From positions 1,364,001-1,428,000 of the forward strand of contig OZ281494.1 of the NCBI GenBank assembly GCA_965637545.1: DNA of 64,000 nucleotides, in the 5' to 3' direction. A program made the position numbers and the translations under genes. Positions 2,920-64,000 of this stretch are shown here, one piece after another. The DNA comes from Phallusia mammillata. Its lineage: Eukaryota. Each line of letters starts with the position of its first letter. Position 1 is the stretch's first letter. The notes below the pieces were generated by a model. The model searched no databases. It had not been told where the DNA came from and saw only the letters and a program-made list of their open reading frames with translations.

Positions 2920-3243
2920 ATGACTGGAAGTTGGTTAAACACATTTTTATAAATTACCCTGATACTATCGCTTATAGGGACAAACTAAAAGTAAGTCAGT
3001 TTGAAATACCACTTCACATATTTAGATGTGATCATCTAAAGTTCTAAACCAAAGGGATGTTGTCAGTGATTATCTTTTCGTTGTGCACAAACGCAATTAC
3101 ACGACGACATTTCCAATTCAATACAAAAACGTCGTTTAGGTTGCTTTAGTCTTAGGTTTTTAGGCTTTTAGGTTAAGTTGCTTTTAGGATTTAGGTTAAG
3201 GACAGTGTATTGATATCATCTGATGATTTTGTGAATGCAAACT
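2920..3243 (+). pseudogene. Truncated remnant of the CTLD-PTP receptor family (signal-peptide exon + piece of CTLD exon 2)
   Basis: 2920-2990 aligns to the gene B signal exon (ATGACTGGA..TGGTTAAACACA..GGACAAACT.AAA|GTAAGT) but has TAA at 2950-2952 and is 2 nt short. 3201-3243 matches GACAGTGTGTTGATATTATCTGACGATCTTGTGGATGCAAAC of exon 2. Confidence 0.8.
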
Positions 3244-4793
3244 CTTCAGCGCCCTTCACCGGAGAAGTCAAACACGAATACGAAAGCTTCGAACCTACAA
3301 ATTCAAAGCCTACATACGTAATAATAACATAATCAGTTTGATTCCTTCTCTACTAATTTGTTTTTTGTTTTAGTTACTGCCTTCATTGAAACATCTTTTT
3401 ACTTTAATGTGTGTAGTGCTTGGCAACAGTCTGTGCAGTTAGCATAGTCGGAAACAGATTAGAAGACCGAAACTCTATGTTACAGCGCAAAAAGCTTCGT
3501 AGAAAATTGGTTCAAATTATGTATGAGTTTATTGAATCAATTAAATGCGTAAGATATGTTTTGAAAGCTCCAATGACCACAATCTTGTTCTGAATTTAAG
3601 GGAAATTGAATGCTGAAATTATTAATTATTACCAGTAAAAAAACTATTAGGAATTGTATGTGAGATAGTGTTTGTACTTTGTTCAAAAATTAGTTTGCTG
3701 TTTGCTACTATGTTCGCTCTTGTGGAATTTTACCTGCTATGTTGTGTAATAGCAATGTTGATTTTGCATGATGTCAGAGCTGAAATAACATCTCCACGTG
3801 TTGACATAACAACTGGATAAAACTCTGGCTTGTAATTTTGACAGAGCCATCAATCAATATCGAGAGTATGTTTATTCGACTTGTCACCCTTACACACACA
3901 TGCGTGCTCTACATTAATTTACACGAACATGTTTGGTTGTCTGGTTACGTTTGGGCTATTTGGTAGTTTAAGTATCCACATGTGCTTTATGACTTGATGA
4001 CATTAATGGAAATCACATAGGTATGAGATGGATTTTTGTTTGTTTTGTATCTTTTAAGTAGCCTAACACAAACACACGTATAATATTTACTTGTATATGC
4101 GGTCAGCAGTAGTTCATTTCAAATTTGCAATTAGAAATAGTGAAAAGTGTATTATTTACTTTCATATACTAAGGCAACCACGCAGCTCGTCAAATACATA
4201 TCGAACACGGCACAGATGTTTTGAATGTTGATATTAAACAAAAAAAGGAATAATCTATTCCCTTGCGAGTAGCGGTAACGTCATGATTATTTCTGAATAA
4301 ACTGGCGAGTATGCTTCTTGTCAGGATTGTACTTTGCCTTAAACAAAACTCTTGTGTTTACACACTATCACATTAAGTAATAATTCATCTATACTACAGT
4401 GCACACGAAATACATACGACGTCATATTGAACGAAGTCAATCATCGTGTTTTTGTGTAACAAGCATGAGCATGAAACAATTTGGCTGAAGTCATCTCCAA
4501 GTTGCGACAGAAATTTGTTTTGAGGAGTCGCTCTGTCAACAGCTCATAGTTCCACGTTTTAGTTAACGTGAATAAGGTAACTGTTGTGCATGATCTCCCA
4601 CACAGTGCTTTTGCAACGTAAGTAAATGTTTTCTCCACAAGCATGCGTCTGTTTTAAAAACATTTACTCAGAGGAAAAACAACAAGTCATTGCTAACACG
4701 GATAGCTGGACAGACAGATGCACATGGAACAATAGTGATTGACTAATTGGTTGAGTGTTGTATGGTTCAGATGTTGAGGTGAATTGGCCAAAT

Positions 4794-5110: not shown

Positions 5111-7743
5111 ATGCCTGGGCATTGGTTGAACAAATGTTTAGAAATTTTGCTGATTGTTTATTGTTTACAAGCACAAACTGAAAGTAAGTGTCAATTAATA
5201 CTAGCTAATAAATTTTGACAGTGATTTATTTATTCAGATAATAACGCAAAGATTAAAACAAGGAAACAAAAAAGTTCAAAACATTTTAGGTTACCAAATC
5301 ACTTTTCAAGCAGTGGAGGACAGTTTATTGTTATTATCTGACGATCTTGTGGATGCAAACACTGCACAGGAGAAATGTTCGTTGCTGGGTGGAAATCTTG
5401 CAATGACTGATGACCCACAGATCAACATAACTCTCACTCAACTCATGACAGACAAATACACGACAGGTTTGCTTTGTTAAAAAGGGGAAGCTCAGCATTG
5501 TTTAAATGCAAGTTTTAGCGACAAAAGTGAGTTATTGAATATTATTAGAGATTTAACCACAAATCAACCTTTTACCGCAAGTCAACTGAATAGAACAGAA
5601 TTTGTTTCAGGATTGCAAAGGGTTTATCTTTTTTATGATCAATCTAAAAAATACGAACGCTACAAATACTCAAAAAATCAGACTGAAATTGCTTTCTGGA
5701 GTTCAACAAAATCTCTCGGACATCTGTGGTATTTCGACTTGTATAAAAGGTGAAGCTTTTTGTATGCACGTGTTGGTTTTGAGCAAACGGGCAAAAGAAC
5801 CAACCTAATAACAACTAACCTTATATCACTTGACTATATGTATAATTTTCAGTAAATCTGAAACCGAGATGCAGGACATTTACTTTTGTGATGCTCCAGA
5901 ATGGGCGACAAAAAACAAGGCTAAGTGGGGAGTCTTTATTGGTAAAACATGTGAATATCTTTTGAACGGAAATCCAAATGGTTCGTGTCACCCAGCTTGT
6001 TTACGCATATTCCTAATAATATGTAAACCATACCTCAGTAGTTACTATTTTTAGATACTTTATTAAACGTTTTCAAAATTACCTTCCATACTTCCAAGCA
6101 TCTAACTTTGCCCTCAGTGCCAAAACGTCATGGATTAATTTTTTTAAGAAACTAATGTATTTTCATTCATAATTCAATAATTATTTGAATATGCTCATTG
6201 CGTAACAACTGTGTGCGAAAACGATCACATGACCGAAACATTTTGCAGGATGGAAAGTCAGATTTACATTGTTTTCTAAAACATCAAAAGGACAAAAAGA
6301 GATATACAACTATAGAAGCAATAGCTTTGGTTCGGACAAGTTGCGCAGTGTGAATGAAACTGACGGAAATTTCTTAAACTACAAAGGATCGTTCCTGGCT
6401 CCAGGTGAGTTTTGTTTCAAAATATAAAAATACACTACGCCGGTTTGGATTCCCAAACACATACAATTTTTAGACATTAACGTTTTGGTTGGAGCTCGTC
6501 ACAACACGTCGTTGAATGGTTGGTATTGGAGCGACGGATCTTTTGCAAACTTTCCTGTTTCCAACGTTACAACTTGCCAGCAGGGAGCTTTGCATTATGG
6601 AATCGGATGGGAGCAGTCAAGCATGAACTGCAGCGGTGAACCGGCTTACTACGCCTGTCAAGTGAAACGTGAGTGTGATTATATTTATAACTTACATTAT
6701 ATAAAACTTCCCAACTGCATTGTCATATGCAGTTGTCACAACCGCAAAGACACTTCCGTGCAACGCTTCAACAGTGGTGGTCAGTTGGAGTGGACTCGAA
6801 AAATTTATCAACATAAATAGAAAATTTGCCCAAGTAATATCGTCTGTCTAAAAGTTGTTTTCTTAGTATTTGTATTAGATATCACCAGAACTTGCTTTGT
6901 CTTTTGGTTCAGGTTGAAATAAATGTTTTGGAACCAAACTGGAGAATGTATTCTTTGTACAGCGATTTGTCAAGAACTGTCAATAATCTTAACTACTCAA
7001 CTAAATACAATATCAAGGTACAATATTCTTTCCAATAACAACATAATAATAACTAGACCAGGCTGTTTGGTAACAGTGTGAGTAAATTGTCAAAGAGTGT
7101 ATTGTAATGTTTACTCATCTGGCTGATTTTTATCCCCCTTATTGTTGCAGGTAATAGTAATGCTTTGTGGTGTGCAGAGTGCTAATGTCACTTCAAATAT
7201 TGTAGTGAACACTTTCGGGAATCCCCCATCGAGTTGCTTTCCTCGAGGTGAGAAGAACATGACATGGTCCAGCATATTCCGTACATCTTGTAAGTAAAAT
7301 AGTAAGCAATTTTGATTCTATTTAGGAATTTATTTGGAAAGCAAATCGTTTGTTGTTTGGAGTCAGTAAACTATAAAATGTAAAAAAAAGTAGGCATCGG
7401 GTAGGACCAAAAACAAAAGGTAATGGTATTATATTTTAGCACTGACCACATTATCACCAACAAACCAACCAGTTGACAATGGTGGTATTTATCTGACAAT
7501 CATTGGGATTTTGGCTGGTGGAATGGTGTTTCTGGTGGTTGTGATTGTTGTATTAGTGATTTTGCTATTACGTCAAAAAATGACTAACCAAGCAACAAAC
7601 GCTAAGTCACAAAATCAAACAACAAAAGGTGAGGGAAGAAAAGTGCACAAATACTAGTTAACAAGTGATATTATGTTTTTGCAGGTTCCTCTCTCGGTAA
7701 AAATGCAAACGAGCGGGTGTACGAAACCTTTGACAAATTGTAA
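5111..7743 (+). CDS. Gene A: phosphatase-less type I receptor (SP - split CTLD with insert - 1 FN3-like - TM - short tail ending VYETFDKL), 472 aa
   Basis: 11 GT-AG exons: 5111-5183, 5290-5466, 5611-5749, 5853-5980, 6249-6404, 6474-6668, 6733-6833, 6913-7017, 7151-7247, 7440-7628, 7685-7743. Total 1419 nt, no internal stop. SP is MPGHWLNKCLEILLIVYCLQAQTE. CTLD motifs: [13 protein letters not shown] and GWYWSDGS..C..GW..MNC..YYAC. TM is IYLTIIGILAGGMVFLVVVIVVLVILLL. AATAAA at 7980. Confidence 0.88.
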
Positions 7744-10261
7744 CCAAACTGTGACAATTAACTGCGACCAAGAGTGGCACTCGATTGTGCTTGTACGTGT
7801 TTTGTTTCTGCTTTCGAGCTTTTCTCAACAGATTTTGGCTTTTCACAATCTTTCTTAGTTGTACAGTTATTAAGACTATTTGTGGATTATCTAAAGTGTA
7901 TTTTCGGACTCCCGTTGTCCCTACCTTTTCTGACTGGAAAATTTCCTTCTTTAGCATTGTTATGACATAATCGTTGCTCAATAAATATGTATCATTACAA
8001 TAACAGATGTGAAAGTCTCCTTTTTTTCTATGAATGTGATGTTGTGCGTTGTAAAGTCATTACATTAAATTTCGCAAACATTTTGTTTGTGTTTATGAAT
8101 TACATAAAGTTAACGATTTTTTTTTGATGCGCAACAAAACCATTCATGTGTGTCTCATGCCACTTTTCATCAACTAGAAGTTTATTAGATTATTTGTTAT
8201 CGGGTAGTGTTTTCGTTGCGTTTTGACGTGCTTGCGTTTAATTCGTTTTCCTTCGTTTATCGTGCACTGTACTATGCATATTAAAAATACTATTGCCAGA
8301 AGAGATCTATAAATTTGATTTGTTTATTGAATACCATGGAAACTAGGGTTGTTTATCGTCCTGGGGATGTTTAATAACTAATCAATGTTACATTACAGTA
8401 AACCAACGTTTTGCCTCCTATGATGTGTAAATGCTACATTTGCTTTGCATGACGTCAGAGGTGTAAGAACATCTGTACGTGATGACTCATAACAATTACC
8501 TTTGTCACATGTGTATAATTTTGTCAGGGCCACTAATGTATGCTTACGGTATGTAAATTTATCCAGTCGTACCTTGTGCTTATATATATATTGTAAGCCG
8601 GGGCGTTCTACTAACAGAGCTCATAGTTATATGTTGCAAAACACATCCATCGATGTACTTACAAATGATCGGCATGAAGTGGAAATTGTTAAATAAGTAA
8701 ACAGAAGTAACATCAGCAGTGATTTTCAGCTGTACTATGATTAACGACATCCAGCCGTCTGCTGCTGCTCCGTGCTGCATAAACGTCTAATGATCCAAGT
8801 ATTCCATTTGTTTTATAAATTGTAATGGATAATACTGTAGATTGGGTGGACGGAATTCAGACAACTGTTATGCATTATATCCCATGCAGCGATTCCGCAA
8901 AGTCAGTGAAGCTTTCCCACACAGAGAGTGTTTTGAATACAATTCATCAAAGATAAACCACGAAGCATGAACGGTGTAGATTGCTTTTCGGACAAATGAT
9001 AAAATACACCTTCGATATTTAAGCGTTAATCAAGGCGGAACTTGGAGGACGCTAGATAAGCTCTACGCGAAACTCACACTCGGTACAGTAATAAAACAAT
9101 TATGACGCTTCGCATACAGTGCCTTAATGCCCTCGCAGATCGCATAGCAAGAGACAGGCATGGATCACTTTTCAGACAGATGATAGTGAACAACATCAGT
9201 TGCGCAAAATTTTTTTGTTTTCCAGGGAAATTGTATTGGCTAACAAGAACTAACTATTTGACTTCAACTGTGTTTCGCGTTGCTCAGCATGTGGGCATAA
9301 AGCGCAGAGTTGCTGCCCGATCGATATTCGTTAACCTTGTTAAGAAGTTTACGACTGGAGTGCTGTGGAAACCCCGCAACGTAACTGATACATATCCAAG
9401 AACAAGGGAGAAATCCAAGCCCTTGTAACGTAACGTTACTTCGTTTCTCAAAAGTTTTCCACTGGAAAATGTTCTGTATAATTTACGGTTCACTTCACCA
9501 AGCGTTAAGGTGATGTTATTATAGAATAATATTGACTTGTCTGTTCCTTGTCAGGATTGTACGTTACCTTGCACAAAACACAATCACATTAAATAATGAT
9601 TTAGTTATGCCACAGTGCACATGATATGCAAGATGAGATGTTCCAACCACGTCATTATACGCATTTTCGTGCAACATGGCGTAGACAGTAAAAGCATACG
9701 ACAAGTCAAATCCAACCAACAACAGGAACCTGCTGTGAGGAAACGCTCTACTAACATAGCTCACAGTTTAAACGTTACTTGGTAACTGCTGTGCATTATC
9801 CCCCACCCAGAGCTTTTGAAACGTAGGTGAATGTTTCCCACACACCGGTGTATGTTTGGAAGTCAATTGCTCAGTGGCAAAACAACAAGCCATGGTTAGT
9901 GCCGAATGCTTAGAAGAGAGGTGCAGCGCAAAACATCAGTTGAGTAACACTGTAGTTCGGCTAAGATATTAAGGTGATGTAGCATGACAAACAAGAACTA
10001 GCTAATTGACTACCTCCAATCGGGGTTTTAAATAAATTTGCAGCCTTGTAATATCACTTCCTAATACAAAAGAGCTATTCGATTAAAAAACAAGCGTAAC
10101 AACTTATAAAACCTTCTGCCAAAGCCGCTAGCTTTTGTGAATGACGTTGCAAAGCAATTATTAGTTTGTTTTAAGTACTTTGCTTCATCTCGAAACGAAC
10201 AGTAGACACAAACGAAAGTGTATGATCAGCACAATCTGTTCGCCAACCCAAAACTCAAGGG

Positions 10262-13200
10262 ATGACTGGAGATTGGTTAAACACAGTTTTAGAAATTTAT
10301 CTGATGGTTTATTGCTTGCACGGACAAACTGAAAGTAAGTGTCAATTATCAAAGAGTTTTGAACATGCGCATGTTTAATTTCAAACAAATCAAACAAATA
10401 GGGATAAATCATTGTATGTCAGGCCTATCGAAGGCGCTATACATAATAAAGTCGATCTCGCAAACATTCCAGTATGACAAGGCATTAGAAATATCACAAC
10501 TGCTGTGGGATAAAAACCATGAAAAAAGCCTTTCAGGGTCACCCGGTCTGCCAACTGAGAGGGTTAGTTCTAATCTCGTCCAATATCAAGCCACACACAC
10601 AATTGCTTGTCACTTATGCTGCACATGTCAGCTTTGTAGGAGGCATTGTCAGTACGACTAAACGTTTGGGGATTTTTTAACTGAGGGCACATATAGTGGA
10701 GCTTCAGAAATAGAGATACCACTGGGCAGCTAAGATTAACATCTAATCAGCACTAAACCGTTCATCACAGCAGCGATTACGGCATAAACATTTGTGAATG
10801 AGTGTACGCCAGACTCATTAAAGACGATTTACCTTGTTGATGCCTTCTGATACACAAGGCAACCCGGACTGGCTTGATTAGTTATAACGCCGTCAATAGG
10901 ACGCTTTGGGACTAATCCCTGTTGTAAATGTGTGTCTTTCAAAGTCAAACATCGGTAAAACTGTAGTTTCAGCGCGATTTAGTCAAGGTATATGCATTAC
11001 GCACCGACGAAAAACAAGAAAACTTTGTAGGTTGCGAAAACAAATTTCAAGCAGTGAAGGACAGTGTGTTAATATTATCTGACGATCTTGTGGATGCAAA
11101 GACTGCACAGAAGAAATGTTTTTTGCTGGGTGGAAATCTTGCAATGACTGATGACCCACAGATAAACACAACTCTTACGCAACTCATGACAGACAAATAC
11201 ACAACAGGTTTGTTTGATGGAAATAGTAAATAGTCATTGATTTAAATGCAAGAGTTTGCAGCGACAAAACTCATTAATTCAGACCTATTGTTGATTTACA
11301 TTAGAACATAAATCCACTGTATAAAACCGAGTTGTTGTTTAGATTTGCAGCGGGTTTATGTTTTTTATGATCAATCAAAACAATACGAACGATGCAGGTA
11401 CTCAAAAAATCCGACTGAAATTGATTTCTGGAAATCAACCAAATCTCTCGGACATCTGTGGTATTTCGACTTGTATAAAAGGTAATACACATTATTAGTG
11501 ACGAAGTCTAATTTCAAAACTTGACGAATGTTGGTTTTGATCAATAGTGGTAATTTTAGTAATCAAAGACGTAAAAACTTTACCTATTCGCAACTGACCT
11601 AACACCACTGTACTTAATCATTTTCAGTAAATCTGAAACCGCGATGCAGAAAATTTATTTTTGCGATGCTCCAGGATTCGCCGCACGAAACAAGGCCAAG
11701 TGGGAAGTGTCTATCGGGACAACATGTGACTTCATTTTGAACGGACGTCTAACTGGTTGGTGTTAACCATCTTGTTTACACAAAAATCTTTACACAAAAT
11801 GCACACCACACCTCAGTGGCTACTACACAAAAATTTTCAGATACTCTATCTGATATATTTCAGACGTACTTTCTAAGACTATTAACATGACTGCCCAACG
11901 CTGTAGATAATGTTTTTGTGAAAGTGTTCTCTCAGCTCAATATTTAAGTTCAACAATTTGGCAACATATGTGAGATCTTTCACTTGATTTTCACCATTGT
12001 GCAAAATAGATCACTTGACAAATATATTTTGCAGGTTGGAGGGTAAGATTCACGTTGTATTCTGAAACTGTGAACGGTCAAAAAGAAATATACAACTACA
12101 AAAGTAGAGGCATAAACTCGGACAAGTTGCGCAGTGTTAATCAAACATTTGGAAATTTCTCACAGTACAATGGATCGTTCCTGACACCAGGTGAACATTT
12201 GGTGTAAACAACATAACACACTACTTCAGATTTGATACACCAACGTGTGCACTTTCTAGATATTAAAGTTATTGTTGGAGTTCGTTACAACACGTCGTTG
12301 AATGGTTGGTATTGGAGCGACGGATCTCAGGCAAACTTTCCCGTTTCCAACGTTACAACTTGCCAGCAGGGAGCGTTGCATTATGGGATCGGATGGGAGC
12401 AATCGAGCATGAACTGTGGTAGTGAAACAGCTTACTACGCTTGTCAAGTGAAATGTAAGTAATTACATAAACGAAAAACAAGCATCAAACAATCATTGCA
12501 TATTTCTGGGATTTGTTCCTATACTGTATAAGGTTGTAATTATTGTTTTGTTTGTTTTAGTCGCTGCAAGTGTGGAAGCATTTCCATGCAACGCTTCAAT
12601 TGCGATTGTCAGTTGGACTGGACTTGATCAATTCATCAACAATAACAATAACAACAATCTAACAGCGCAAGTAAGAACTAATTGTACCTGAAGATAATCT
12701 GACACCTAAAATATGTGATTTGTTTCTGGTGTTGTCTTTAGGTTGATATTCATGTTTTGGAAACAAACAGAAGAATTTTGGCATCATATGCAGATTTATC
12801 GACAACAATTGATAACCTAAAATTTTCAAAAAGATATAACATTAAGGTAAACGGTGTTTTAAAGTCGGCGAAAAAATATTTTATATTTATTTCATATGTG
12901 GTGTTTGTACCTGCAGCCTTGTGTTTGATAAAAACAACATCCCATTTTTTATATAAATATAAATGCAAATTAATCCAATTTTTGCTTAAAAAAATCTGAA
13001 AGTATCACGCAAAACAATTTACTCACTTTATTATTTTCAGATCACAACAATCCTTACAGGATGCCTAAAAGCTAACGTCTCAACAACCAAAGTAGTAACA
13101 ACACATGGAAACCCCCCATCGAGTTGCTATCCTAAAGGTAAACGGATGTGTTACTTGTGGTATTTGTATAAAGCTCAAAAAACATTTTCAGTAAACACGA

Positions 13201-26600: not shown

Positions 26601-29600
26601 AAAGGGTTTCGATATACGTGTAGTTATCTAATTACAATTAAAACGACAAACGAGTTAAGTGGATACACCACTTGCATTACTGCTTAGAATGTAACAGGAT
26701 GGATTCGATATAGCCATTAGTATAAAAAAATTAAGGTGAGCAAAAAGTCTTACTCATGTCTCTGTAAGCACGACACTCACTTACGTGTATAATATTGACT
26801 GTAGAAGGCGCTAAACTTCGTACAATTGCCGATTTGTCTGAATACTGACGGTAGATTTTCTCCTTCAATACTGGTGTGAAAATCTCAACCTGAGCACATT
26901 TTACTCTAGGAATGAAATTATTTTTTCTCGAACTTTTACCCATATATTGCGGATAATAAAGGTACCTTCACCTCTGCAATTAATCCGTTTTTGTCAATAA
27001 ACTGGTCGAGTCCGGTCCAACTGACAACAACCGTTGAGGCGTTGCATTCAAAAGTCGTTGCGTTGGTAACAACTGTTGATGCATAGTCACAAAATTTAAA
27101 AAAGAATGTCAAATTATGCCTTTAACCCACACAAAGATTCTTTTATTACCTGGAGGATAGCAACTCGATGGTGGGTTAGGGAATGTTCTGAATTTACGCG
27201 TGAAGGAAACGTTAGAGCTAACGCAACCAGAGAGAATTGCTGTCACCTGGGATTTAAATGTTGTTTAAATAATTCTGCACAATTTCCGCGTATTACGTTG
27301 TTGAGCTACTTCGTGTTGTTACTGTTTTAGGTTATGTCGACGGTTACCGTTAACCTGTAATGTAAAAAAGAAATGTTCGCAATTTTTGACATAAATACCT
27401 TTAATTGATATTTTGTTTCAAAACTTAAGTTTCCAAGTGTAGTCGATCCATCTAAATACGGTGATGTATGTCTTTCGTTCAGTACCGAAACATGGATTTC
27501 GACCTACGTACAACACATTTCTCAATCTATAAAAATTTAACCTGCTTTGGATAAATGTTACCACTGGACTGAGATTATGTTTGTTGATAAATTGATCGAG
27601 TCCAGTCCACCTGACCACCACAGTTGAAGCGTTGCATCTAACTGTCTTTACTTTAGCTTTGACTAAAAGTGAAATAACAAGTTTAATTAAAATGCAGCAG
27701 CAGATTTGCACTGTATGTTTAATTTGTTTTTATTGCTTTGCAGCAACAGAAATATTCATCCACTATCTCTGTCAATTTTTCTACAGCATTTACTTGGACA
27801 AACACTGCCCTGGACTCTAAGTCGCGTGCTGTGATGTTCGATACTATAGTTCTATAGTTGGCTATTTTGTTATTTGGCAACAATTGCTGGCTAGACAAAC
27901 GACGAATTCGGAACGCGTATTGAATCATAACCAAGGGATGGAGAAGTAATATGGACATGACTGTAAACCGCCATCGCATAGCTTTGAGGCCTGATTTCAC
28001 AGTATGTGTCTGCAACTTTTGTATCTATAATATTACCTAGCTATAAAAAGTTAGTTGCTGGACTTAACCCGGTGCCAAACGGTGCCACGAATCTCATAAG
28101 GTTAAGATTAGGGTGAAAAAATGTCGTAATGATTAAAAGACATATCATAAAGCAGCGGGTGACTGACGTATGATTAAATGTCGTATACGGGTGATGAAAT
28201 TTCGAGTGTGATAAAACGTCACTCAACCGTGCTAAATAAACCGAAAAAGTCCTGTTTAAGGTATTGTCTATTTTTGCCCATCATGTATGCCTTTTCTACG
28301 TGTTGTTCTTTTTAGCTGTACTTATTGTAGGACATGTATGGATCTGTCAAACAAACTTTCGAATTTCAACCGGCTTTTCAATACCAATTCGGCATCGGGC
28401 TTACACTTTCCAGGTAATGGTCAAATTTCAGACACACTTACAGCCATAAATGTAGACAAACTGTGGAGAAAACAACTTCACAAACCGCAACTAACAATTG
28501 AATGTATACGATATTTAATTTTTGTTTCCTATTTTTAACTTGCGCTAAACTCCAGCCAACCAACTCGCGATATCACTCACGTTTTACTTGATAAGCGTAG
28601 TAGGCCTTTCTTTTGCACTTTATGCTTGATTGTATATGTATTGTTTATTTTAAGATGAATTGTTTTGTTTTTACTCACGATTACTTTACTCACGTTTCAC
28701 TTGGCAAGCGTAGTAAGCCACTTCCCCATTGTAGTTCATGCTTGACTGCTCCCATCCGATCCCATAATGCAACGCTCCCTGCTGGCAAGTTGTAACGTTG
28801 GAAACGCGAAAGTTTGCCCGAGATCCGTCCGTCCAGTACCAACCATGTAGCGACGTGTTATAACGAGCTCCAATAAGAATCCTAATGTCTAGAACAACAT
28901 TTGCGAGTGTTATTTATAAATAGAAATAACACGATCAAAACATATTTTCTTTGTATGTTTTCAAACCAAACGCTCACTTGGTACCAGAAACGATCCCTCA
29001 TATTTGGTAAACGTTTCATACGTTTTATGGACACTGCGTAACTTGCTAGAAATTGGATATGTATATCGCCCATAGGTGAATATTTCTTTTTGGCGCCCCA
29101 AGGTGTTAATTTTTGAAAACAAGGAATACCGGAATCTCCATCCTGAAAAGAATACAGATTTCGTTGTAGGTCAAACCTATGTAGATGGTTTTTGTTTGAC
29201 TGCAGTAATAAAGATGAAAGAAAGAACGTATTAGTCAAAACGGGATAAATAGCAAGATAGTATCACAATAGTATTTTTATTGGGAAGCTACACGGAAATT
29301 GATGAATAAGTTTGTTTTTGGTTGTTGCAGGGGACTTTAGACATCGTAGTGTGCTTGTGGCCTTGGGTAATGTTTTAAGTATATTTAGGCATCATTGGTA
29401 TATTTAATTCGAAATTTTCGACATTTTAGTACAAACATTTTGTTGTGGAACGTTAACAGTTACTAATCTGAGTAAAACGCAAACCTTGGACACTACAGTT
29501 TTTTCCAATGGTTACATTCCACCTCTCCGTGTCTCTGCCATTCGAATATTTGCAGAAGTAAATGTTTTCACCATAAGTTCCAGGATTGCTATCAGAGAAT

Positions 29601-30252
29601 AATCTGTTTAACTAGTTTGCATCAATTTGTTTGTATTTAAAATTGTCACCTTTTGTACAAGTCGAAATACCACAGATGTCCAAGAGATTTCGTACTACTC
29701 CAACCGACTTCAGCGGGATTCTTTGAGTATTTATATCGCCTAGGATCGGTGGTATTGTAAAAAATATAAACTCGCACTAAATCTGAAAAATGTTACGATT
29801 ATTTGTTTTTTACTTTATTTTGTTTATTATGTACAATGTGTTGATTTAAAGCTAAGTTTATCCTCAACTATGGTTACAACATGGTCTGTTGTTGAACTAT
29901 AAACCAGTTTTACAATACCAAGATTTTGCATTATAAAAACCTGTTGTGTGTTTGTCTGTCATGAGTTGATTGAGAGTTGTGTTGATCTGTGGGTCATCAG
30001 TCATTGCAAGATTTCCACCCAGCAAAGAACATTCCTCCTGTGCAGTGTTTGCATCCACAAGATCGTCAGATAATATCAACACACTGTCCTTCACTGCATT
30101 AACGGTTTTGTTACAACCTGATTAAGAACATTATTGTTTAAGATTTTTATTTTATAATGTCTCAGATTGCCATACTTACTGGGAGTTTGCCCCTTCGAGT
30201 AACAAACCAACAGCAAACATACAAGTATTTCAAATTTCATTTTCTCAGTCAT
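17690..30252 (-). CDS. Gene D: receptor-type tyrosine phosphatase (SP - split CTLD - 4 FN3-like - TM - D1 - D2), 34 exons, 1314 aa if normally spliced; juxtamembrane donor mutated
   Basis: The exon chain sums to 3945 nt with no stops. ATG 30252; CTLD/insert 30117-28694; FN3 27662-24119; TM 23924-23807; JM 23638-23577; NRYKNIFP 22821-22725; DYINA/QGP 22467-22265; KCEQYWP 21458-21327; WPDHG..VHC 20921-20782; SAGVGRTG 20718-20583; D2 19730-17976; FDTYSNFK* 17764-17690. The donor after 23577 reads TT instead of GT. Confidence 0.85.
21542..22026. mobile_element. hAT-type MITE in a PTP intron of gene D
   Basis: TIRs CAGGGGTGCACAACCT (21542) and AGGTTGTGCACTCATG (22011-22026; 14/16 match). 8-bp TSD GGTTAAAC/AGTTAAAC. 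Absent from the equivalent short intron of F. Confidence 0.8.
24119..27662 (-). repeat. Four tandem three-exon FN3-like modules (101/105/97 nt), partly duplicated with their introns at ~1.1-1.2 kb period
   Basis: Each module reads C-N-A-S..V.WTGLDQF / V(E)I....L....Y..K / V..I..G...N......T.(G)NPP..C(F/Y)P. Introns at 24950-25900 and 26130-26960 are visibly near-copies. Confidence 0.85.
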
Positions 30253-30739
30253 CGTAACAATTTGGTTCAGGTTTGGCGATAGACGGAAGTTCAACATCCA
30301 AATGTGATAATCTGCGTTCCCTCTTAGATGTGCACAATTTGTTTAATCCAACCAGGTTAAAATTTACAAGTCATGAAAATCATTATACAACTTTTATGTT
30401 ACAACCTTTGTTTGTTTCCTGCACACCTACAATACGTTGACGTAAAAGTCGTAATCTTTTATATTTCTTTTGTGCTTATTTCAGTGCCGAGCCAAACAGA
30501 AATATCGAGTTAATTGCCGCTGAGTTTCTTGTGCGCCTTGCTAGTGTAAGGTCTTTCTATTGCGCTCGACAAAATAAATATTTTTCCGAAACCGTTGGTT
30601 CATGTTTCAACCCGCTGCAGTAAATACTTCCCTAACGCCTGCCAGACTTGCGGGTTTCCTGATTAAATCAACTTACGATACGCCCTTTTGCTGCGCTGTA
30701 AAAATAAAACAAAAAACGGATCGGCCAATGCGATACAGG

Positions 30740-31020
30740 ACCCGAAGATTTTAACAAATACACATTCCACTTCTCCGTTCGCCTGTTTTTCCAAGCCTCG
30801 CAAATGTAAATTCATTCCATCGTGTTTTCAGGATTCCTGCCTGATATAATTCGGTTTAATTGATAGTAACAAGTTTATAATTATCTCCTTTTCACCTTTT
30901 GAACAAGTCGAAATACCACAGATGTCCGAGAGATTTTGTACTTTTGGGGAAATTTACTTTAACCGAATTATTTCTGTATTTTCATAATCTATTATTTTCA
31001 TCATCTAACTAGGCCTTATC
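30740..31020 (-). pseudogene. Remnant of insert exons 3-4 of the receptor family (duplicate at 63754-64000)
   Basis: [13 protein letters not shown]|GT ends at 30896. The next exon (from 30836) reads NPENTME*IYICEAWKNRRTEKWNV with TGA at 30814-30812. Confidence 0.8.
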
Positions 31021-33858: not shown

Positions 33859-35199
33859 CGTTCCAATTTCCTTTGTTGTCTAGGCCTTCACAATTTCTTT
33901 CAATTGTTACATTCCACTTCTCCTTTTCAATTTTCCTGTTTTTACAAGCCTCGCAGAAATATATTGGTTTCATTGTGTTTTCGGGGTAAAAATTCTGTCT
34001 ACTTCAGTGGTTCTCAACCTGGGGTCCGCGCAAAGCGTTTTCGGGGGGTCCGCGACAACTTTCAAAATTTGCAGACAACGAGATTGATAAACTTGATTTA
34101 AAAAATATGTTTTAGCGTTTCAAAAAAGCATGAAACTTGTTTTTCAAAAAAGCATGAAACTTGTAAAACATTCTTCAAAGGCAAAAACCAAAATGCATTA
34201 TGATATATTAACCCCATTGTGATGCATCGGAGGTAAATTGTCAGTGGCAAACTACGTCACATCACAATGCATTGGCTCTCATTTTATGGGGTCCGATGTC
34301 GCAGCCCAGACAAAGGGATTGACATTTTGATCCCGCACCAAACATGGTTGGTATTTTATGCGTCATGTATCGGTTGCTTGTTATAAAAAATGTGTGAAAA
34401 TTACCAACACCTTCAGAGGGGTCCGCGATTTGCCTGCTAGTATCAAAAGAGAACCACTGGTCTAATTGAGAGTGAGAAGTTTGTAAATATCTGGTTTGAA
34501 CCTTTCATACAAGTGAATTTAAACCAATTTTTCCGCTGATCCAATCGGTAATTACCAGTTTATAATTATCTGTTTTTCACCATTTATGCAAGACGAAATA
34601 CCACAGATGTCCGAGAGGTTTTCTCCTTTTCCAGAAATCCACTTCAGCTGAATTGTTTGAGCATTTATATCGTTCATATGTGACGGGGTCATCAAAAATA
34701 TAAACCCGTTGCAAATCTAAAGGAAAGTTTGTTTCATAACCTTTATTTAAACAAGTTTTATTTTTTCTATACGGTTGATTTGCATTTAATAATCTTAAGA
34801 GTTTGTTTTGAAAATGTAATTTTTTTACAAACCTGTTGTATATTTGTCGGACACACTTTCTTTCACTGCTTGCATCGTTTTGTTGCATCCTGGAAAACAC
34901 CTCGTTGTTGCACTGTAATTGTTTGATGCAATAAATTGTTCAACGCAATACCACGCTTGATTTTGGGCAATTGCAGTGCATGTGGCAGAGTAAATTGCAA
35001 AAATAGGCAAAATTAAATACCCCAACGAACGGATATTAACAGTTTTGTTATTAAAAGTTGACTCACCGTGAATAGAAACCAAGCAATCAGATATTAACAC
35101 TTTTAAAAAGTAAAACAAAAAATTACATTTAGTTTGTGCGGTTATAACCCGAACCATCATTAAAATAACCACAATCGTGCTGATGTAAGGCTAACTCAT
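33859..35199 (-). pseudogene. Gene E: 5' fragment of the receptor family (SP exon, internally deleted CTLD exon, two insert exons)
   Basis: SP exon 35199-35127 (73 nt, TAG at codon 3). Exon 2 at 34889-34833 is only 57 nt (120 nt deleted in frame). Exon 3 at 34716-34581 reads DLQRVYIF..LGHLWYF. Exon 4 (IYFCEACK..WNVTIERNC..GNWNG) ends at 33859 and has no in-frame acceptor. Confidence 0.8.
34005..34459. mobile_element. hAT-type MITE inside pseudogene E
   Basis: TIRs CAGTGGTTCTC (34005) and GAGAACCACTG (34449-34459). 8-bp TSD GTCTACTT/GTCTAATT with central TA. GGGGTCCG subterminal repeats. Confidence 0.85.
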
Positions 35200-40633: not shown

Positions 40634-40833
40634 NNNNNNNNNNNNNNNNNNNNNNNNNNNNNNNNNNNNNNNNNNNNNNNNNNNNNNNNNNNNNNNNNNN
40701 NNNNNNNNNNNNNNNNNNNNNNNNNNNNNNNNNNNNNNNNNNNNNNNNNNNNNNNNNNNNNNNNNNNNNNNNNNNNNNNNNNNNNNNNNNNNNNNNNNNN
40801 NNNNNNNNNNNNNNNNNNNNNNNNNNNNNNNNN
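40634..40833. other. 200-N scaffold gap whose flanks overlap by 69 bp
   Basis: 40565-40633 is repeated exactly at 40834-40902. Confidence 0.95.
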
Positions 40834-42019: not shown

Positions 42020-45000
42020 GAATATACCAACCCAGTGTCTACTGATTTTGAGTCAGAAGCATTTGCTTCTTAATTAATCATTTACTGAAAGAATTTTGAC
42101 TCAGTGATCGTGGATATTAACATGCCTACTATTAGAGGGACAGATCCGGTGAATAGCATTTATGTTTATCCGTTTGTAGGGCTATTTATTTATTTTTGCT
42201 ATCAATTGTGCCAAATGCACTGCAATTTTTTAAAACTTAACGTGTTAATCGGTTAAACAACTTATTTGGCAAAATATTTGCAGAAATCAGTTAACAATGA
42301 GGTACTCTCCAGGTTGCAACAAAACTTGTCAAGCAGTGAAGGAAAGTGTGTTGATATTATCTGACGATCTTATGGATGCAAACACTGCACTGGAGAAATG
42401 TTCTTTGTTGGGTGGAAATCTTGCAATGACTGCTGACCCGCAGATCAACACAACTCTCACTCAAATCATGACAGACAAATACACGACAGGTTGGCATATG
42501 TGCATCTGATATTAAGGCTTGGCAACAAAGTACAACATATAGACCCAACTGCCTGTCTCAACAAAGCGTTATTTTAGACTTGCAGCGGGTTTATATTTTT
42601 TTTGAGCCGGACAAATATGAACGATGCAAATACTCATATAGTTCGGCTGAACTGGATTTCTGGAAAAGTACAAAATCTCTCGGACATCTGTGGTATTTCG
42701 ACTTGTACAGAAGGTGAAAAAAAGGAACAAATTTGTCACTATCAATTAAACCTAATTATGTTGAACAGGAATCTTGAAAAGGCGATGGAATCAATTTACA
42801 TTTGTGAGGCATGGAAAAACAGGAGGCTGGAGACATGGAAAGTGAACATTGGAAGAAATTGTGCACGCCTAGACGGCGATGGAAATTGGAACGGTTAGTT
42901 ATCGTTGTAGCCAGATCAACAACACTGATTGGATCACAATATTATATTGAAACCTAAACTTATTTCTACTGTTTATGGTTTAGGTCTGTCAGGAACAAAA
43001 AAATTTTTTAATTTCTTTGAACGCACTTACAAATATTTGCAGGATGGAATCTGCGATATTCTTTATTTTCCGACACTAAAACAAGAAAACGCCAAAAACA
43101 AATGTTTATTTATGGAAGCATCGGTTTAATGAGTGGAAGCAAATTGCGAAGTGCCAATAAACCGTTTGAAAGCTTTAACAAATCAGATGGATCGTTCCTG
43201 GCACCAAGTGAGCGTTTGGTCTTAAAACGTATAACTTCTACCTCATGTTAAAAAAGTATTTTTACCGTATTCACCGTATTTTTAGAAGTCGACGTGTTTG
43301 TTGGAGCTCGTTACAACACGTCGTTGCATGGCTGGTATTGGAGCGACGGATCTCCAGCAAACTTTCCCGTTTCCAACGTTACAATTTGCCAGCAGGGAGC
43401 GTTGCATTATGAGATCGAATGGGAGCAGTCAAGCATGAACTCCAGTGGGGAACCGGCTTACTACGCTTGTCAAGTAAAATGTGAGTAATTACAATCTTTT
43501 TAAGTGTGTAAAATGTTTCGGTAAGATGTTCTTGTTTTTTTTTTTGGAAAGTTAAGTAATCGTGACCTTATTTAACTTTCGCAAACATTTACTGTAACGT
43601 CTGAAATCACGTTTAGTCAATGCTACTGTGGAGACATTTCCATGCAACGCTTCAACTGTGCTTGTCAATTGGACTGGACTTGATCAATTCATCAACAACA
43701 ACAATCTAACAGCGCAAGTAAGAACCAATCGTCCCTAGAGATAATCTAACATAAGTTTAAGAAATGTGATTTGTTTCTGATGTTGTCTTTAGGTTGAGAT
43801 TCATGTTTTGGAAACAAACAGAAGAATTTCGGCTCCATATGCAGATCTATCGACTAACATAGAGAATCTAAGATTTTCAAAAACATATATCATTAAAGTA
43901 AACGGCTACAAAAAATTTGAAAGCATCGTGCAAATCAATTTACCCACTTTATAATTTACAGGTCACAGCAATGCTTCTCAACGACCAAAATAGTAACAAC
44001 ATATGGAATCCCCCCATCGAGTTGCTATCCAAAAGGTAAGCGAATGTGTCACGTCTGCTATTTGTATAAACCCCAAAACACGTTCTTTTAGTAAACACGA
44101 CTGCAGAAACATTTCCATGTAACGCTTCTACTGTGCTTGTCGGTTGGAATGGACTCGATCATTTCATCAACGAAAACGCACTTACAGCGCAGGTATGAAG
44201 CAAAATCTGTAATATTTGCTTTATGTACATCAAAACAGAAGTAAAGTAGGAAAAACAAAAGAAATAAACCAAAGAAACCAGAATTTTCTATCATAAATAC
44301 CTGCAGGTTGCGATTGATGTCCAGGGTTGGAATCGAACAATCTCTGTTCCTTATTCCGACAGTTCCGCGACATTAGAAAATCTTTTAAACTCTGCTTTGC
44401 ATGATATTAAGGTAACCGTAGTTTCCTTTCATTGGTTGAAAACTACGTATCTTTTACTGGAATTAACTTACATTTTTGTACGTCCAGGTCACAGCGATTG
44501 TCACTGGTTCAATCAACACAAACATCACATCCAATTTGAAAGTAAGAACTCCGGGAAATCCGCCTCCAAGCTGTTTTCGTGAAGACATCCCGACCAATAC
44601 TGCAATGAGTGTTGCAAAGATTGCTGGTCTGGTGATTGGGTTGTTGCTTCTGCTGCTTGCCATTGTTGTGTCGTTGGTCATGTTTATTCGTCGAAGGCAC
44701 AGGTTTGATTTTAAACTTCGGATTTATATTGCAGCTAATTGTCAAAGTGCAGAGAAACTGTAAACAAAAATCTGAAAGTAATTTAAGTTAACATTGATAA
44801 AGAGGAATCTAACTCCCTTCATATAAATAAAAACCTTAAACCTGAAATATGTTTTACGTATTTGCAGGTACAGCAAAGAAGTTTCAAATCCTCAAATTCT
44901 TGCATCACCTCAAGGTGCCTTTGTTAAACTCGACTTGCCCATATATTTAAGATTGCTTATGTAAGAGCTTGAAAATACTTGAAAAAGTACAAAATACAAC

Positions 45001-59200: not shown

Positions 59201-62200
59201 TTTTTGGAATTCAATTTAGGTTAAACCTTACTTTATTTCTACTGGTGTAAATGTGACAATATATATGACAGCAAATTTCAGTTATTGGGCAAGTTCTGTT
59301 GCTACTTACGCATTACACAAGAACCAATTGTTAATTTACCTGCAGGAAAGCAGCTTTGAGGGGGGTTACCGGGAGTTTTTACTGTCAGATTGGATGTGAT
59401 GTTTGTGTTGATTGAACCAGTGACAATCACTGTAACCTGCAATAAATAACAAGACGAATTTGTTTTGTTTAGAAAATATTGAAGCAGAAAGGGTGGGTTT
59501 GTTTGAAACAGTGCTTGATGATACCTAATACGAACATTGAAAAACCTGCATTTTTTGGAGTTTACAATTGCCGGAAGAAAGCTATGCGTCGCAGTATCAT
59601 AATGTGGCGTACTGAAAGGGTTTCGATATACGTGTAGTTATCTAATTACAATTAAAACGACAAACGAGTTAAGTGGATACACCACTTGCATTACTGCTTA
59701 GAATGTAACAGGATGGATTCGATATAGCCATTAGTATAAAAAAATTAAGGTGAGCAAAAAGTCTTACTCATGTCTCTGTAAGCACGACACTCACTTACGT
59801 GTATAATATTGACTGTAGAAGGCGCTAAACTTCGTACAATTGCCGATTTGTCTGAATACTGACGGTAGATTTTCTCCTTCAATACTGGTGTGAAAATCTC
59901 AACCTGAGCACATTTTACTCTAGGAATGAAATTATTTTTTCTCGAACTTTTACCCATATATTGCGGATAATAAAGGTACCTTCACCTCTGCAATTAATCC
60001 GTTTTTGTCAATAAACTGGTCGAGTCCGGTCCAACTGACAACAACCGTTGAGGCGTTGCATTCAAAAGTCGTTGCGTTGGTAACAACTGTTGATGCATAG
60101 TCACAAAATTTAAAAAAGAATGTCAAATTATGCCTTTAACCCACACAAAGATTCTTTTATTACCTGGAGGATAGCAACTCGATGGTGGGTTAGGGAATGT
60201 TCTGAATTTACGCGTGAAGGAAACGTTAGAGCTAACGCAACCAGAGAGAATTGCTGTCACCTGGGATTTAAATGTTGTTTAAATAATTCTGCACAATTTC
60301 CGCGTATTACGTTGTTGAGCTACTTCGTGTTGTTACTGTTTTAGGTTATGTCGACGGTTACCGTTAACCTGTAATGTAAAAAAGAAATGTTCGCAATTTT
60401 TGACATAAATACCTTTAATTGATATTTTGTTTCAAAACTTAAGTTTCCAAGTGTAGTCGATCCATCTAAATACGGTGATGTATGTCTTTCGTTCAGTACC
60501 GAAACATGGATTTCGACCTACGTACAACACATTTCTCAATCTATAAAAATTTAACCTGCTTTGGATAAATGTTACCACTGGACTGAGATTATGTTTGTTG
60601 ATAAATTGATCGAGTCCAGTCCACCTGACCACCACAGTTGAAGCGTTGCATCTAACTCTCTTTACTTTAGCTTTGACTAAAAGTGAAATAACAAGTTTAA
60701 TTAAAATGCAGCAGCAGATTTGCACTGTATGTTTAATTTGTTTTTATTGCTTTGCAGCAACAGAAATATTCATCCACTATCTCTGTCAATTTTTCTACAG
60801 CATTTACTTGGACAAACACTGCCCTGGACTCTAAGTCGCGTGCTGTGATGTTCGATACTATAGTTCTATAGTTGGCTATTTTGTTATTTGGCAACAATTG
60901 CTGGCTAGACAAACGACGAATTCGGAACGTGTATTGAATCATAACCAAGGGATGGAGAAGTAATATGGACATGACTGTAAACCGCCATCGCATAGCTTTG
61001 AGGCCTGATTTCACAGTATGTGTCTGCAACTTTTGTATCTATAATATTACCTAGCTATAAAAAGTTAGTTGCTGGACTTAACCCGGTGCCAAACGGTGCC
61101 ACGAATCTCATAAGGTTAAGATTAGGGTGAAAAAATGTCGTAATGATTAAAAGACATATCATAAAGCAGCGGGTGACTGACGTATGATTAAATGTCGTAT
61201 ACGGGTGATGAAATTTCGAGTGTGATAAAACGTCACTCAACCGTGCTAAATAAACCGAAAAAGTCCTGTTTAAGGTATTGTCTATTTTTGCCCATCATGT
61301 ATGCCTTTTCTACGTGTTGTTCTTTTTAGCTGTACTTATTGTAGGACATGTATGGATCTGTCAAACAAACTTTCGAATTTCAACCGGCTTTTCAATACCA
61401 ATTCGGCATCGGGCTTACACTTTCCAGGTAATGGTCAAATTTCAGACACACTTACAGCCATAAATGTAGACAAACTGTGGAGAAAACAACTTCACAAACC
61501 GCAACTAACAATTGAATGTATACGATATTTAATTTTTGTTTCCTATTTTTAACTTGCGCTAAACTCCAGCCAACCAACTCGCGATATCACTCACGTTTTA
61601 CTTGATAAGCGTAGTAGGCCTTTCTTTTGCACTTTATGCTTGATTGTATATGTATTGTTTATTTTAAGATGAATTGTTTTGTTTTTACTCACGATTACTT
61701 TACTCACGTTTCACTTGGCAAGCGTAGTAAGCCACTTCCCCATTGTAGTTCATGCTTGACTGCTCCCATCCGATCCCATAATGCAACGCTCCCTGCTGGC
61801 AAGTTGTAACGTTGGAAACGCGAAAGTTTGCCCGAGATCCGTCCGTCCAGTACCAACCATGTAGCGATGTGTTATAACGAGCTCCAATAAGAATCCTAAT
61901 GTCTAGAACAACATTTGCGAGTGTTATTTATAAATAGAAATAACACGATCAAAACATATTTTCTTTGTATGTTTTCAAACCAAACGCTCACTTGGTACCA
62001 GAAACGATCCCTCATATTTGGTAAACGTTTCATACGTTTTATGGACACTGCGTAACTTGCTAGAAATTGGATATGTATATCGCCCATAGGTGAATATTTC
62101 TTTTTGGCGCCCCAAGGTGTTAATTTTTGAAAACAAGGAATACCGGAATCTCCATCCTGAAAAGAATACAGATTTCGTTGTAGGTCAAACCTATGTAGAT

Positions 62201-63266
62201 GGTTTTTGTTTGACTGCAGTAATAAAGATGAAAGAAAGAACGTATTAGTCAAAACGGGATAAATAGCAAGATAGTATCACAATAGTATTTTTATTGGGAA
62301 GCTACACGGAAATTGATGAATAAGTTTGTTTTTGGTTGTTGCAGGGGACTTTAGACATCGTAGTGTGCTTGTGGCCTTGGGTAATGTGTTAAGTATATTT
62401 AGGCATCATTGGTATATTTAATTCAAAATTTTCGACATTTTAGTACAAACATTTTGTTGTGGAACGTTAACAGTTACTAATCTGAGTAAAACGCAAACCT
62501 TGGACACTACAGTTTTCTCCAGTGGTTACATTCCACCTCTCCGTGTCTCTGCCATTCGAATATTTGCAGAAGTAAATGTTTTCACCATAAGTTCCAGGAT
62601 TGCTATCAGAGAATAATCTGTTTAACTAGTTTGCATCAATTTGTTTGTATTTAAAATTGTCACCTTTTGTACAAGTCGAAATACCACAGATGTCCAAGAG
62701 ATTTCGTACTACTCCAACCGACTTCAGCGGGATTCTTTGAGTATTTATATCGCCTAGGATCGGTGGTATTGTAAAAAATATAAACTCGCACTAAATCTGA
62801 AAAATGTTACGATTATTTGTTTTTTACTTTATTTTGTTTATTATGTACAATGTGTTGATTTAAAGCTAAGTTTATCCTCAACTATGGTTACAACATGGTC
62901 TGTTGTTGAACTATAAACCAGTTTTACAATACCAAGATTTTGCATTATAAAAACCTGTTGTGTGTTTGTCTGTCATGAGTTGATTGAGAGTTGTGTTGAT
63001 CTGTGGGTCATCAGTCATTGCAAGATTTCCACCCAGCAAAGAACATTCCTCCTGTGCAGTGTTTGCATCCACAAGATCGTCAGATAATATCAACACACTG
63101 TCCTTCACTGCATTAACGGTTTTGTTACAACCTGATTAAGAACATTATTGTTTAAGATTTTTATTTTATAATGTCTCAGATTGCCATACTTACTGGGAGT
63201 TTGCCCCTTCGAGTAACAAACCAACAGCAAACATACAAGTATTTCAAATTTCATTTTCTCAGTCAT
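50240..63266 (-). CDS. Gene G: apparently intact receptor-type tyrosine phosphatase (SP - split CTLD - 4 FN3-like - TM - D1 - D2), ~1312 aa, RPTP-alpha/epsilon-like C-tail
   Basis: Paralog of D with the same 34-exon structure. The JM donor is intact (CAG|GTGCTG at 56591/56590). WPDHG and HC|SAGVGRTG are intact (exon junction 53788/53725). One D2 exon has an in-frame 6-nt deletion. No stop found in the exons I read. Stop at 50242-50240. Confidence 0.87.
50727..51223. mobile_element. G-specific hAT-like insertion with one recognisable TIR
   Basis: About 500 bp absent from D. The right end is GTTTGAGAACCACTG, and the segment is flanked by TATTAAAG/TATTGAAG (TSD-like). The left TIR is not recognisable. 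Confidence 0.6.
54549..55034. mobile_element. hAT-type MITE, duplicate of 21542-22026
   Basis: Same TIRs and GGTTAAAC/AGTTAAAC TSD at the orthologous intron position in G. Confidence 0.8.
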
Positions 63267-64000
63267 CGTAACAATTTGGTTCAGGTTTGGCGATAGACGG
63301 AAGTTCAACATCCAAATGTGATAATCTGCGTTCCCTCTTAGATGTGCACAATTTGTTTAATCCAACCAGGTTAAAATTTACAAGTCATGAAAATCATTAT
63401 ACAACTTTTATGTTACAACCTTTGTTTGTTTCCTGCACACCTACAATACGTTGACGTAAAAGTCGTAATCTTTTATATTTCTTTTGTGCTTATTTCAGTG
63501 CCGAGCCAAACAGAAATATCGAGTTAATTGCCGCTGAGTTTCTTGTGCGCCTTGCTAGTGTAAGGTCTTTCTATTGCGCTCGACAAAATAAATATTTTTC
63601 CGAAACCGTTGGTTCATGTTTCAACCCGCTGCAGTAAATACTTCCCTAACGCCTGCCAGACTTGCGGGTTTCCTGATTAAATCAACTTACGATACGCCCT
63701 TTTGCTGCGCTGTAAAAATAAAACAAAAAACGGATCGGCCAATGCGATACAGGACCCGAAGATTTTAACAAATACACATTCCACTTCTCCGTTCGCCTGT
63801 TTTTCCAAGCCTCGCAAATGTAAATTCATTCCATCGTGTTTTCAGGATTCCTGCCTGATATAATTCGGTTTAATTGATAGTAACAAGTTTATAATTATCT
63901 CCTTTTCACCTTTTGAACAAGTCGAAATACCACAGATGTCCGAGAGATTTTGTACTTTTGGGGAAATTTACTTTAACCGAATTATTTCTGTATTTTCATA

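Follow-up and report, generated by a model that had tools for sequence, protein, structure and literature searches.

DUF5648 is a bacterial accessory domain with a (β3-α)3 fold, or three-bladed β-α propeller, and is not a trefoil. It is used as an add-on recognition module of larger proteins and, in one endolysin, as a putative cell-wall-binding domain. Here, we describe a gene family of the ascidian Phallusia mammillata in which a domain of this predicted architecture interrupts a C-type lectin-like domain (CTLD). The family was found in a window of 64,000 nucleotides (contig OZ281494.1; AT-rich, with a GC content of about 0.36), and we refer to its first member there as gene A. The explanation that best accounts for the data as a whole, to which we assign a probability of roughly 0.7, is that these genes encode ascidian type-I membrane receptors with a CTLD lacking Ca2+ motifs as the outermost part and a complete three-bladed domain nested in the connection between its helix α2 and strand β2. 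Both folds are already known. In a literature search, we found no published CTLD with an entire domain inserted into its α2-β2 connection, nor papers on DUF7023, the tunicate family compared with the insert below, by that name, or on C-type lectin receptor phosphatases in Ciona.

A CTLD split by a three-exon cassette

Gene A consists of six exons on the + strand (5111–6668) that form one intact open frame, with AG/GT splice sites throughout. Exon 1 (5111–5183) provides the start codon and signal peptide MPGHWLNKCLEILLIVYCLQAQTE, recognizable by the ATG, the hydrophobic leader, and the GT donor; a homologous exon lies at 10262–10334 in a second copy of the gene, copy B. The N-terminal half of the CTLD, comprising β0/β1, α1 with the first cysteine (Cys1), and α2, is encoded by exon 2 (5290–5466). 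The C-terminal half is encoded by exon 6 (6474–6668), with DINVLVGAR (β2 being VLVGAR), WYWSDGS, Cys2, Cys3, and YYAC, the β5 strand with Cys4. The introns of gene A have phases 1, 1, 2, 1, and 1, and phase 1 continues past exon 6; exons 3–5 thus make up a cassette whose two borders are both in phase 1. Through exon 6, the protein has 289 residues, divided into a leader (1–24), the N-half (25–83), the insert (84–224, 141 residues), and the C-half (225–289). An earlier reading of the window, referred to here as the original prediction, had proposed a CTLD whose halves are separated by exons 3–5, and the exon coordinates and peptides are as it described them. Judging from the conservation of frame and phase and from RefSeq models of two other species, the exons are probably spliced together. 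The sequencing runs that contain the stretch behave as DNA, with the introns covered. Read ‘joints’ were considered as splice evidence and ruled out, as they lack GT..AG ends and look like paralog or assembly-graph artifacts.

Several lines of evidence identify the two halves. When the insert is removed, the Pfam profile Lectin_C (PF00059) crosses the junction of the gene A halves with 20.5 bits (E-value 8.6e-4), just below its gathering score of 22.6 bits. A family profile of five full-length sequences, compared with all PDB sequences, matches almost exclusively CTLDs: its positions 2–58 align to residues 2–57 of many solved CTLDs, which defines exon 2 as the N-half, and CLEC4D, the reference for exon 6, aligns in two stretches that follow one another in order (profile 2–49 to chain 2–49, and profile about 190–255 to chain 60–128). 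This two-stretch match places the insert between α2 and β2. An AlphaFold model of the whole ectodomain has a mean predicted local distance difference test (pLDDT) score of 59.6, with 78–86 in the N-half and 45–63 in the insert. More than 500 solved CTLDs match it with Z-scores of 11.9–12.8 and a root-mean-square deviation (rmsd) of about 3 Å over 98–120 residues, and since the aligned residues are drawn from model positions 2 to 264, the N-half and the C-half together close into a single CTLD, with the insert between them. The original prediction had named such a model and structure search as a check and had located the insertion between CTLD helix 2 and strand 2, a placement borne out by both the CLEC4D alignment and the closure of the modeled domain. 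The CTLD cysteines of gene A (Cys54, Cys259, Cys277, and Cys286), which, going by the residues, would form its two conserved disulfide pairs (α1-β5 and β3-loop), are invariant in copy B and in four orthologs. None of the eight family members inspected (A–D, P0001, P0002, P0003, and P0017) has EPN, QPD, or WND at the canonical sites, a lack that the original prediction had likewise noted.

A relative without the insert shows what the uninterrupted domain looks like. In L013, which comes from another tunicate (metagenome contig JGI24159J19872_10081426), an N-half exon (770–930) and a C-half exon (1618–1811) are separated by a single phase-1 intron of 687 nucleotides, which holds no cassette-like coding sequence and lies at the cassette site of gene A. 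The spliced L013 sequence matches Lectin_C at 32.7 bits (E-value 1.3e-7) over profile positions 3–106 of 107. Together, the profile matches, the closure of the model, and L013 establish that exons 2 and 6 form one split CTLD. As the L013 intron has the same phase and site, the cassette sits at an intron position that also exists without it; L013 fits a gain as well as a loss of the cassette at this position.

The insert is predicted to be a three-bladed domain

For structure prediction of the insert, we aligned the gene A insert with those of the four orthologs and with in-frame single-exon translations from window copies and metagenome loci (alignment A7), and checked the result by eye. Paralogs of the window entered the structure alignments exon by exon; a full-length alignment with added single-exon rows was discarded, as MAFFT had put the rows of exons 3 and 5 in the wrong place. 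The resulting insert-only AlphaFold model has a mean pLDDT of 84.1 and a predicted template modeling score of 0.81, with four of the five models reaching at least 80.

The model consists of three β1-β2-α-β3 units, with nine long strands and helices. The first unit, or blade 1, coincides exactly with exon 3 (5611–5749) and reads LQRVYLFYD, YKYS, the helix QTEIAFWSS, and β3. Blade 2 begins in exon 4 (5853–5980) with QDIYFCDA as β1, KWGVFI as β2, and a short helix (CEYL); according to alignment and model, this exon also carries both family-invariant cysteines of the insert. Its β3, KVRFTLFS, is encoded by exon 5 (6249–6404), followed by the entire blade 3 (KEIYNYRS, DKLR, no helix, and FLNYKGSFLA). 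The opening and closing motifs that the original prediction had picked out correspond to the β1 and β3 strands of these units. Its three-fold repeat is thus present as structural units of the model, but not as a significant repeat in sequence: an hhalign comparison of the exon 3, 4, and 5 blocks did not rise above chance (P about 0.3).

Searched against 48,161 PDB representatives, the insert model has a single strong match, residues 352–482 of PDB entry 9uj0_A (‘Aegerolysin-L pore’), with a Z-score of 10.5 and an rmsd of 3.2 Å over 119 residues. The runners-up, at Z-scores of 3.2–4.2, are single-chain C1q/TNF trimers, whose matches reflect the three-fold symmetry. Among the clusters of the AlphaFold database, seven DUF5648 representatives are matched with a Foldseek probability of 1.00 and template modeling (TM) scores of 0.54–0.64, next to the Oikopleura dioica DUF7023 protein E4XKE2 (TM 0.56); further matches are C-terminal domains of MACPF proteins, a GH25 enzyme, an S8 peptidase, and a cnidarian-restricted protein. 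In Swiss-Prot, the extracellular insert of vertebrate DISP3 (human residues 827–973) is matched with a TM-score of 0.67–0.69 and a probability of 1.00. The three-bladed domain of DISP3, itself predicted, is apparently likewise inserted in a larger domain. Leads from the ESM atlas pointing to Lectin_C, PAN, and UL45 clusters (scores below 0.9) are contradicted by the fold model.

At the sequence level, the inserts of all four orthologs match the Pfam family DUF7023 (PF22894) with 19.6–23.1 bits (E-values of 7e-5 to 8e-4) at consistent profile positions of about 21–114, while the DUF5648 profile (PF18885) finds no match in the inserts of gene A and the four orthologs even at E-values up to 10. 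The DUF7023 matches are best read, from sequence, as remote homology and not as membership. The nested domain, as modeled, has the architecture of bacterial DUF5648 and a remote kinship to the tunicate family DUF7023.

Relatives in other tunicates

Searching 1.84 billion representative proteins exhaustively with HMMER, we found only 22 relatives, and word-indexed homolog searches with the 289-residue gene A protein, the corresponding region of P0001, and the family alignment A1 returned only the queries themselves. Four of the 22 relatives are full length, and their alignment covers the insert as well as the two CTLD halves, with residues conserved along its entire length. Three of them belong to Clavelina lepadiformis, two with short tails (592 and 537 residues) and one of 1090 residues with two tyrosine-phosphatase domains; the fourth is Ciona intestinalis XP_002129521, with 483 residues. 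In public records, these orthologs are named ‘uncharacterized’ or ‘C-type lectin domain-containing’. Invariant residues are spread through the whole insert in the alignment and include the two cysteines of exon 4. Judging from these alignments, the split layout is older than the divergence of these ascidian lineages. The RefSeq forms labeled ‘isoform X2’ in Ciona and Clavelina begin at an internal methionine near the end of the N-half, and the cassette is not skipped in them.

Further copies in the window and their divergence

Including gene A, five copies in the window have an intact spliced open reading frame, AG/GT sites, and the five-exon ectodomain layout. Copy B (exons 2–6 at 11031–12454, +), preceded by the signal-peptide exon mentioned above, has the same split layout. 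Exons 2–6 of the other copies lie at 28694–30117 (−) in copy C, at 42313–43480 (+) in copy D, and at 61708–63131 (−) in copy F, which is a near-identical duplicate of copy C. The insert lengths given in the original prediction (141, 134, and 142 residues) were reproduced, albeit under other copy labels: 141 in A and B, 134 in C and F, and 142 in D. Copies B, C, D, and F run on into tyrosine-phosphatase exons. No phosphatase exons were found between the gene A ectodomain and the start of copy B at 10262; the segment downstream of exon 6 (6723–7800, +) holds an exon that matches P0001 in its PVLCDGTSLTVSW region, the transmembrane stretch LTIIGILAGGMVFLVVVIVVLVILLL, and a short tail.

The copies differ strongly from exon to exon. 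Exons 2 and 6 are 84–90% identical in DNA sequence for every pair of window copies, whereas exons 4–5 reach only 52–67% and the introns cannot be aligned between copies. Synonymous divergence (dS) is 0.13–0.42 in the CTLD halves compared with about 0.9–1.9 in the insert (0.52 for the A–B pair). Among copies A–D, the CTLD exons have a three- to ten-fold smaller dS than the insert despite unalignable flanking introns, which could stem from gene conversion limited to exons or from constraint at the nucleotide level. The ratio of non-synonymous to synonymous divergence is 0.2–0.4 in the insert, indicating that it is constrained and not decaying.

A related contrast was seen in two DNA-like public runs. 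There, the contigs that resemble exon 2, exon 6, or the 3′ end of exon 3 by 95% or more add up to hundreds of times the depth of the single-copy surroundings. In run X1, these stretches (5288–5475, 5664–5757, and 6416–6697) reach about 10,000–47,000 in their peak bins compared with about 54 for introns and exons 4–5 (5758–6321); these are summed contig depths, which are no copy number. The contrast suggests many near-identical CTLD exons in the genome, with exons 4–5 at single-copy depth.

Other features of the window concern its assembly and history. The segments 28694–30981 and 61708–63995 contain the same gene head twice, with 98–100% identity per exon and an offset of 33,014 bases; the pair stems either from a segmental duplication of recent date or from duplication in the assembly. 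Orphan pieces resembling exon 3, exon 4, or exon 2, without the remaining ectodomain, were found at 34714–34583 (−), 33982–33875 (−), 30981–30898 (−), 63995–63912 (−), and 3195–3248 (+), and are probably relics of further copies. Finally, a run of 200 N at 40634–40833, between copies, marks an assembly gap or mask.

Discussion

How could such a receptor have arisen, and how might it work? The cassette may have entered, or dropped out of, a pre-existing CTLD intron by exon shuffling. In the encoded protein, the conserved CTLD would serve as a scaffold, and the propeller, above all the divergent blades 2 and 3, would form the ligand-binding surface that determines specificity; by analogy with DUF5648, the ligand would probably be a glycan. 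The signal would leave the receptor via the tandem tyrosine-phosphatase domains in copies B, C, D, and F, or via the short tail in gene A. The combination of near-constant CTLD halves with blades 2 and 3 that diverge under purifying selection makes it likely that the insert is the specificity-determining and perhaps glycan-binding head, and CTLD exons that hardly vary next to blade exons that diverge suggest a diversified repertoire for recognition. For a ligand-binding role of the insert as such, argued by analogy, we consider the chances about even. A wider role may be envisaged: the CTLD might be a constant frame that presents the propeller as a variable head, in a very large and diversified set of ascidian receptors that signal through tyrosine phosphatases or through tails with tyrosine motifs. 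This would be a so far unrecognized form of invertebrate non-self or glycan recognition, and its head would derive from a tunicate domain of the DUF7023 type, ultimately DUF5648-like, that was shuffled into an intron of a CTLD gene. This larger picture is tentative, and we regard it as doubtful in its full extent.

The main functional rival reverses the roles of the two domains. The nested domain could be a structural spacer or oligomerization element, with the CTLD binding its ligand independently of Ca2+ in the manner of natural killer cell receptors. Many CTLDs do bind proteins without Ca2+ motifs, and no part of the family is as conserved as the CTLD exons. Yet in toxins, endolysins, and glycoside hydrolases, domains of the same fold serve as accessory modules for recognition, and it is the insert that differs between copies, as would fit a family in need of many specificities. 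We therefore hold the spacer role to be unlikely, if still worth keeping in mind.

Far less credible is the idea that there is no insert at all and that the ectodomain consists of two tandem, partly degenerate CTLDs, the first extending from exon 2 across exon 3 to the end of IYFCD, 15 residues into exon 4, and the second taking up the remainder through exon 6. By eye, motifs of the insert, among them IYFC, recall WxWSDGS, the β3 strand, and FICE; the cysteine pattern can be read as C1–C4 twice; and language-model features of the insert point to Lectin_C clusters, although with a score of 0.88 this is a lead only. In a profile-profile comparison with hhalign, however, the first part of the insert matches the C-half of the family with a probability of just 0.25%. 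Moreover, exons 2 and 6 come together as one CTLD in the model, the insert on its own folds into something other than a CTLD, and the insert-less L013 joins both halves directly.

The weakest candidate is the β-trefoil lectin domain, which the original prediction had suggested in the form of a DUF5648/AbfB-type trefoil: three units of about 45 residues with recurring aromatic motifs, and insert termini that must be near each other for the CTLD to close, would suit it, but while the likeness to DUF5648 was recovered by Foldseek, DUF5648 itself is no trefoil, the model has nine long strands and helices in β-β-α-β order instead of 12 short strands, no trefoil appears at a Z-score of 2 or above among the PDB representatives, and IL-1β reaches a TM-score of only 0.19 in Foldseek.

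We therefore return to the nested, three-bladed domain, whose structural core, a CTLD without EPN, QPD, or WND that carries a folded propeller in its α2-β2 connection, is probable on the basis of the models. A number of observations weigh against it. The intact gene A protein has no match in Pfam, and the gene A insert, alone or as single exons, matches neither DUF7023 nor DUF5648 there; the DUF7023 scores of the orthologs fall under the gathering score of 27 bits. The insert model depends on a shallow alignment of 24 rows, mostly of single exons, and the whole-ectodomain model, with its low confidence, does not fix how the propeller would pack against the CTLD. Two RNA runs, examined for transcript support of gene A, have no coverage of the stretch. 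Furthermore, the third CTLD cysteine is lost in copies C, F, and D, where MNC has become MNY or MNS (28695–28886 (−), 61709–61903 (−), and 43288–43479 (+), respectively), which would leave its usual partner Cys2 (TTCQQ or TICQQ) unpaired.

Finally, we would like to place the split CTLD into the context of known systems. With the insert assigned to the DUF5648/DUF7023 fold, a testable hypothesis can be offered for about 140 residues that previously had no known fold, that of a glycan-recognition head on a lectin-like scaffold. The assignment also widens the range of this fold, best known from toxins, endolysins, and glycoside hydrolases of bacteria, to include cell-surface receptors of chordates. 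Like DUF5648, the insert comprises about 130–140 residues in three β1-β2-α-β3 units. It differs in lacking the third helix, in having a cysteine pair in blade 2 that is predicted to form a disulfide, and in showing no match to the Pfam family in sequence; in addition, it belongs to an animal host and is nested in another domain, whereas DUF5648 is appended. DUF7023 is the nearest sequence family to the orthologous inserts, and its member E4XKE2 is also a tunicate protein. However, the inserts cover about half of the 185-position profile, and the stretch of E4XKE2 that precedes the match, with only 47 residues, is too short to hold the N-half of a CTLD. The C-terminal domain of 9uj0 and the insert of DISP3 share the fold at 6–19% sequence identity in unrelated host proteins; the assignment thereby also connects to the unexplained extracellular insert of vertebrate DISP3. 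With canonical CTLDs, such as CLEC4D, the collectins, and snake-venom CTLDs, the family shares the fold (Z-score of about 12 over about 112 residues), the α1-β5 and β3-loop cysteines, and the WxWxDGS and YYAC motifs. In contrast to them, the gene A family carries a domain of 134–142 residues between α2 and β2 and has a shortened long-loop region.

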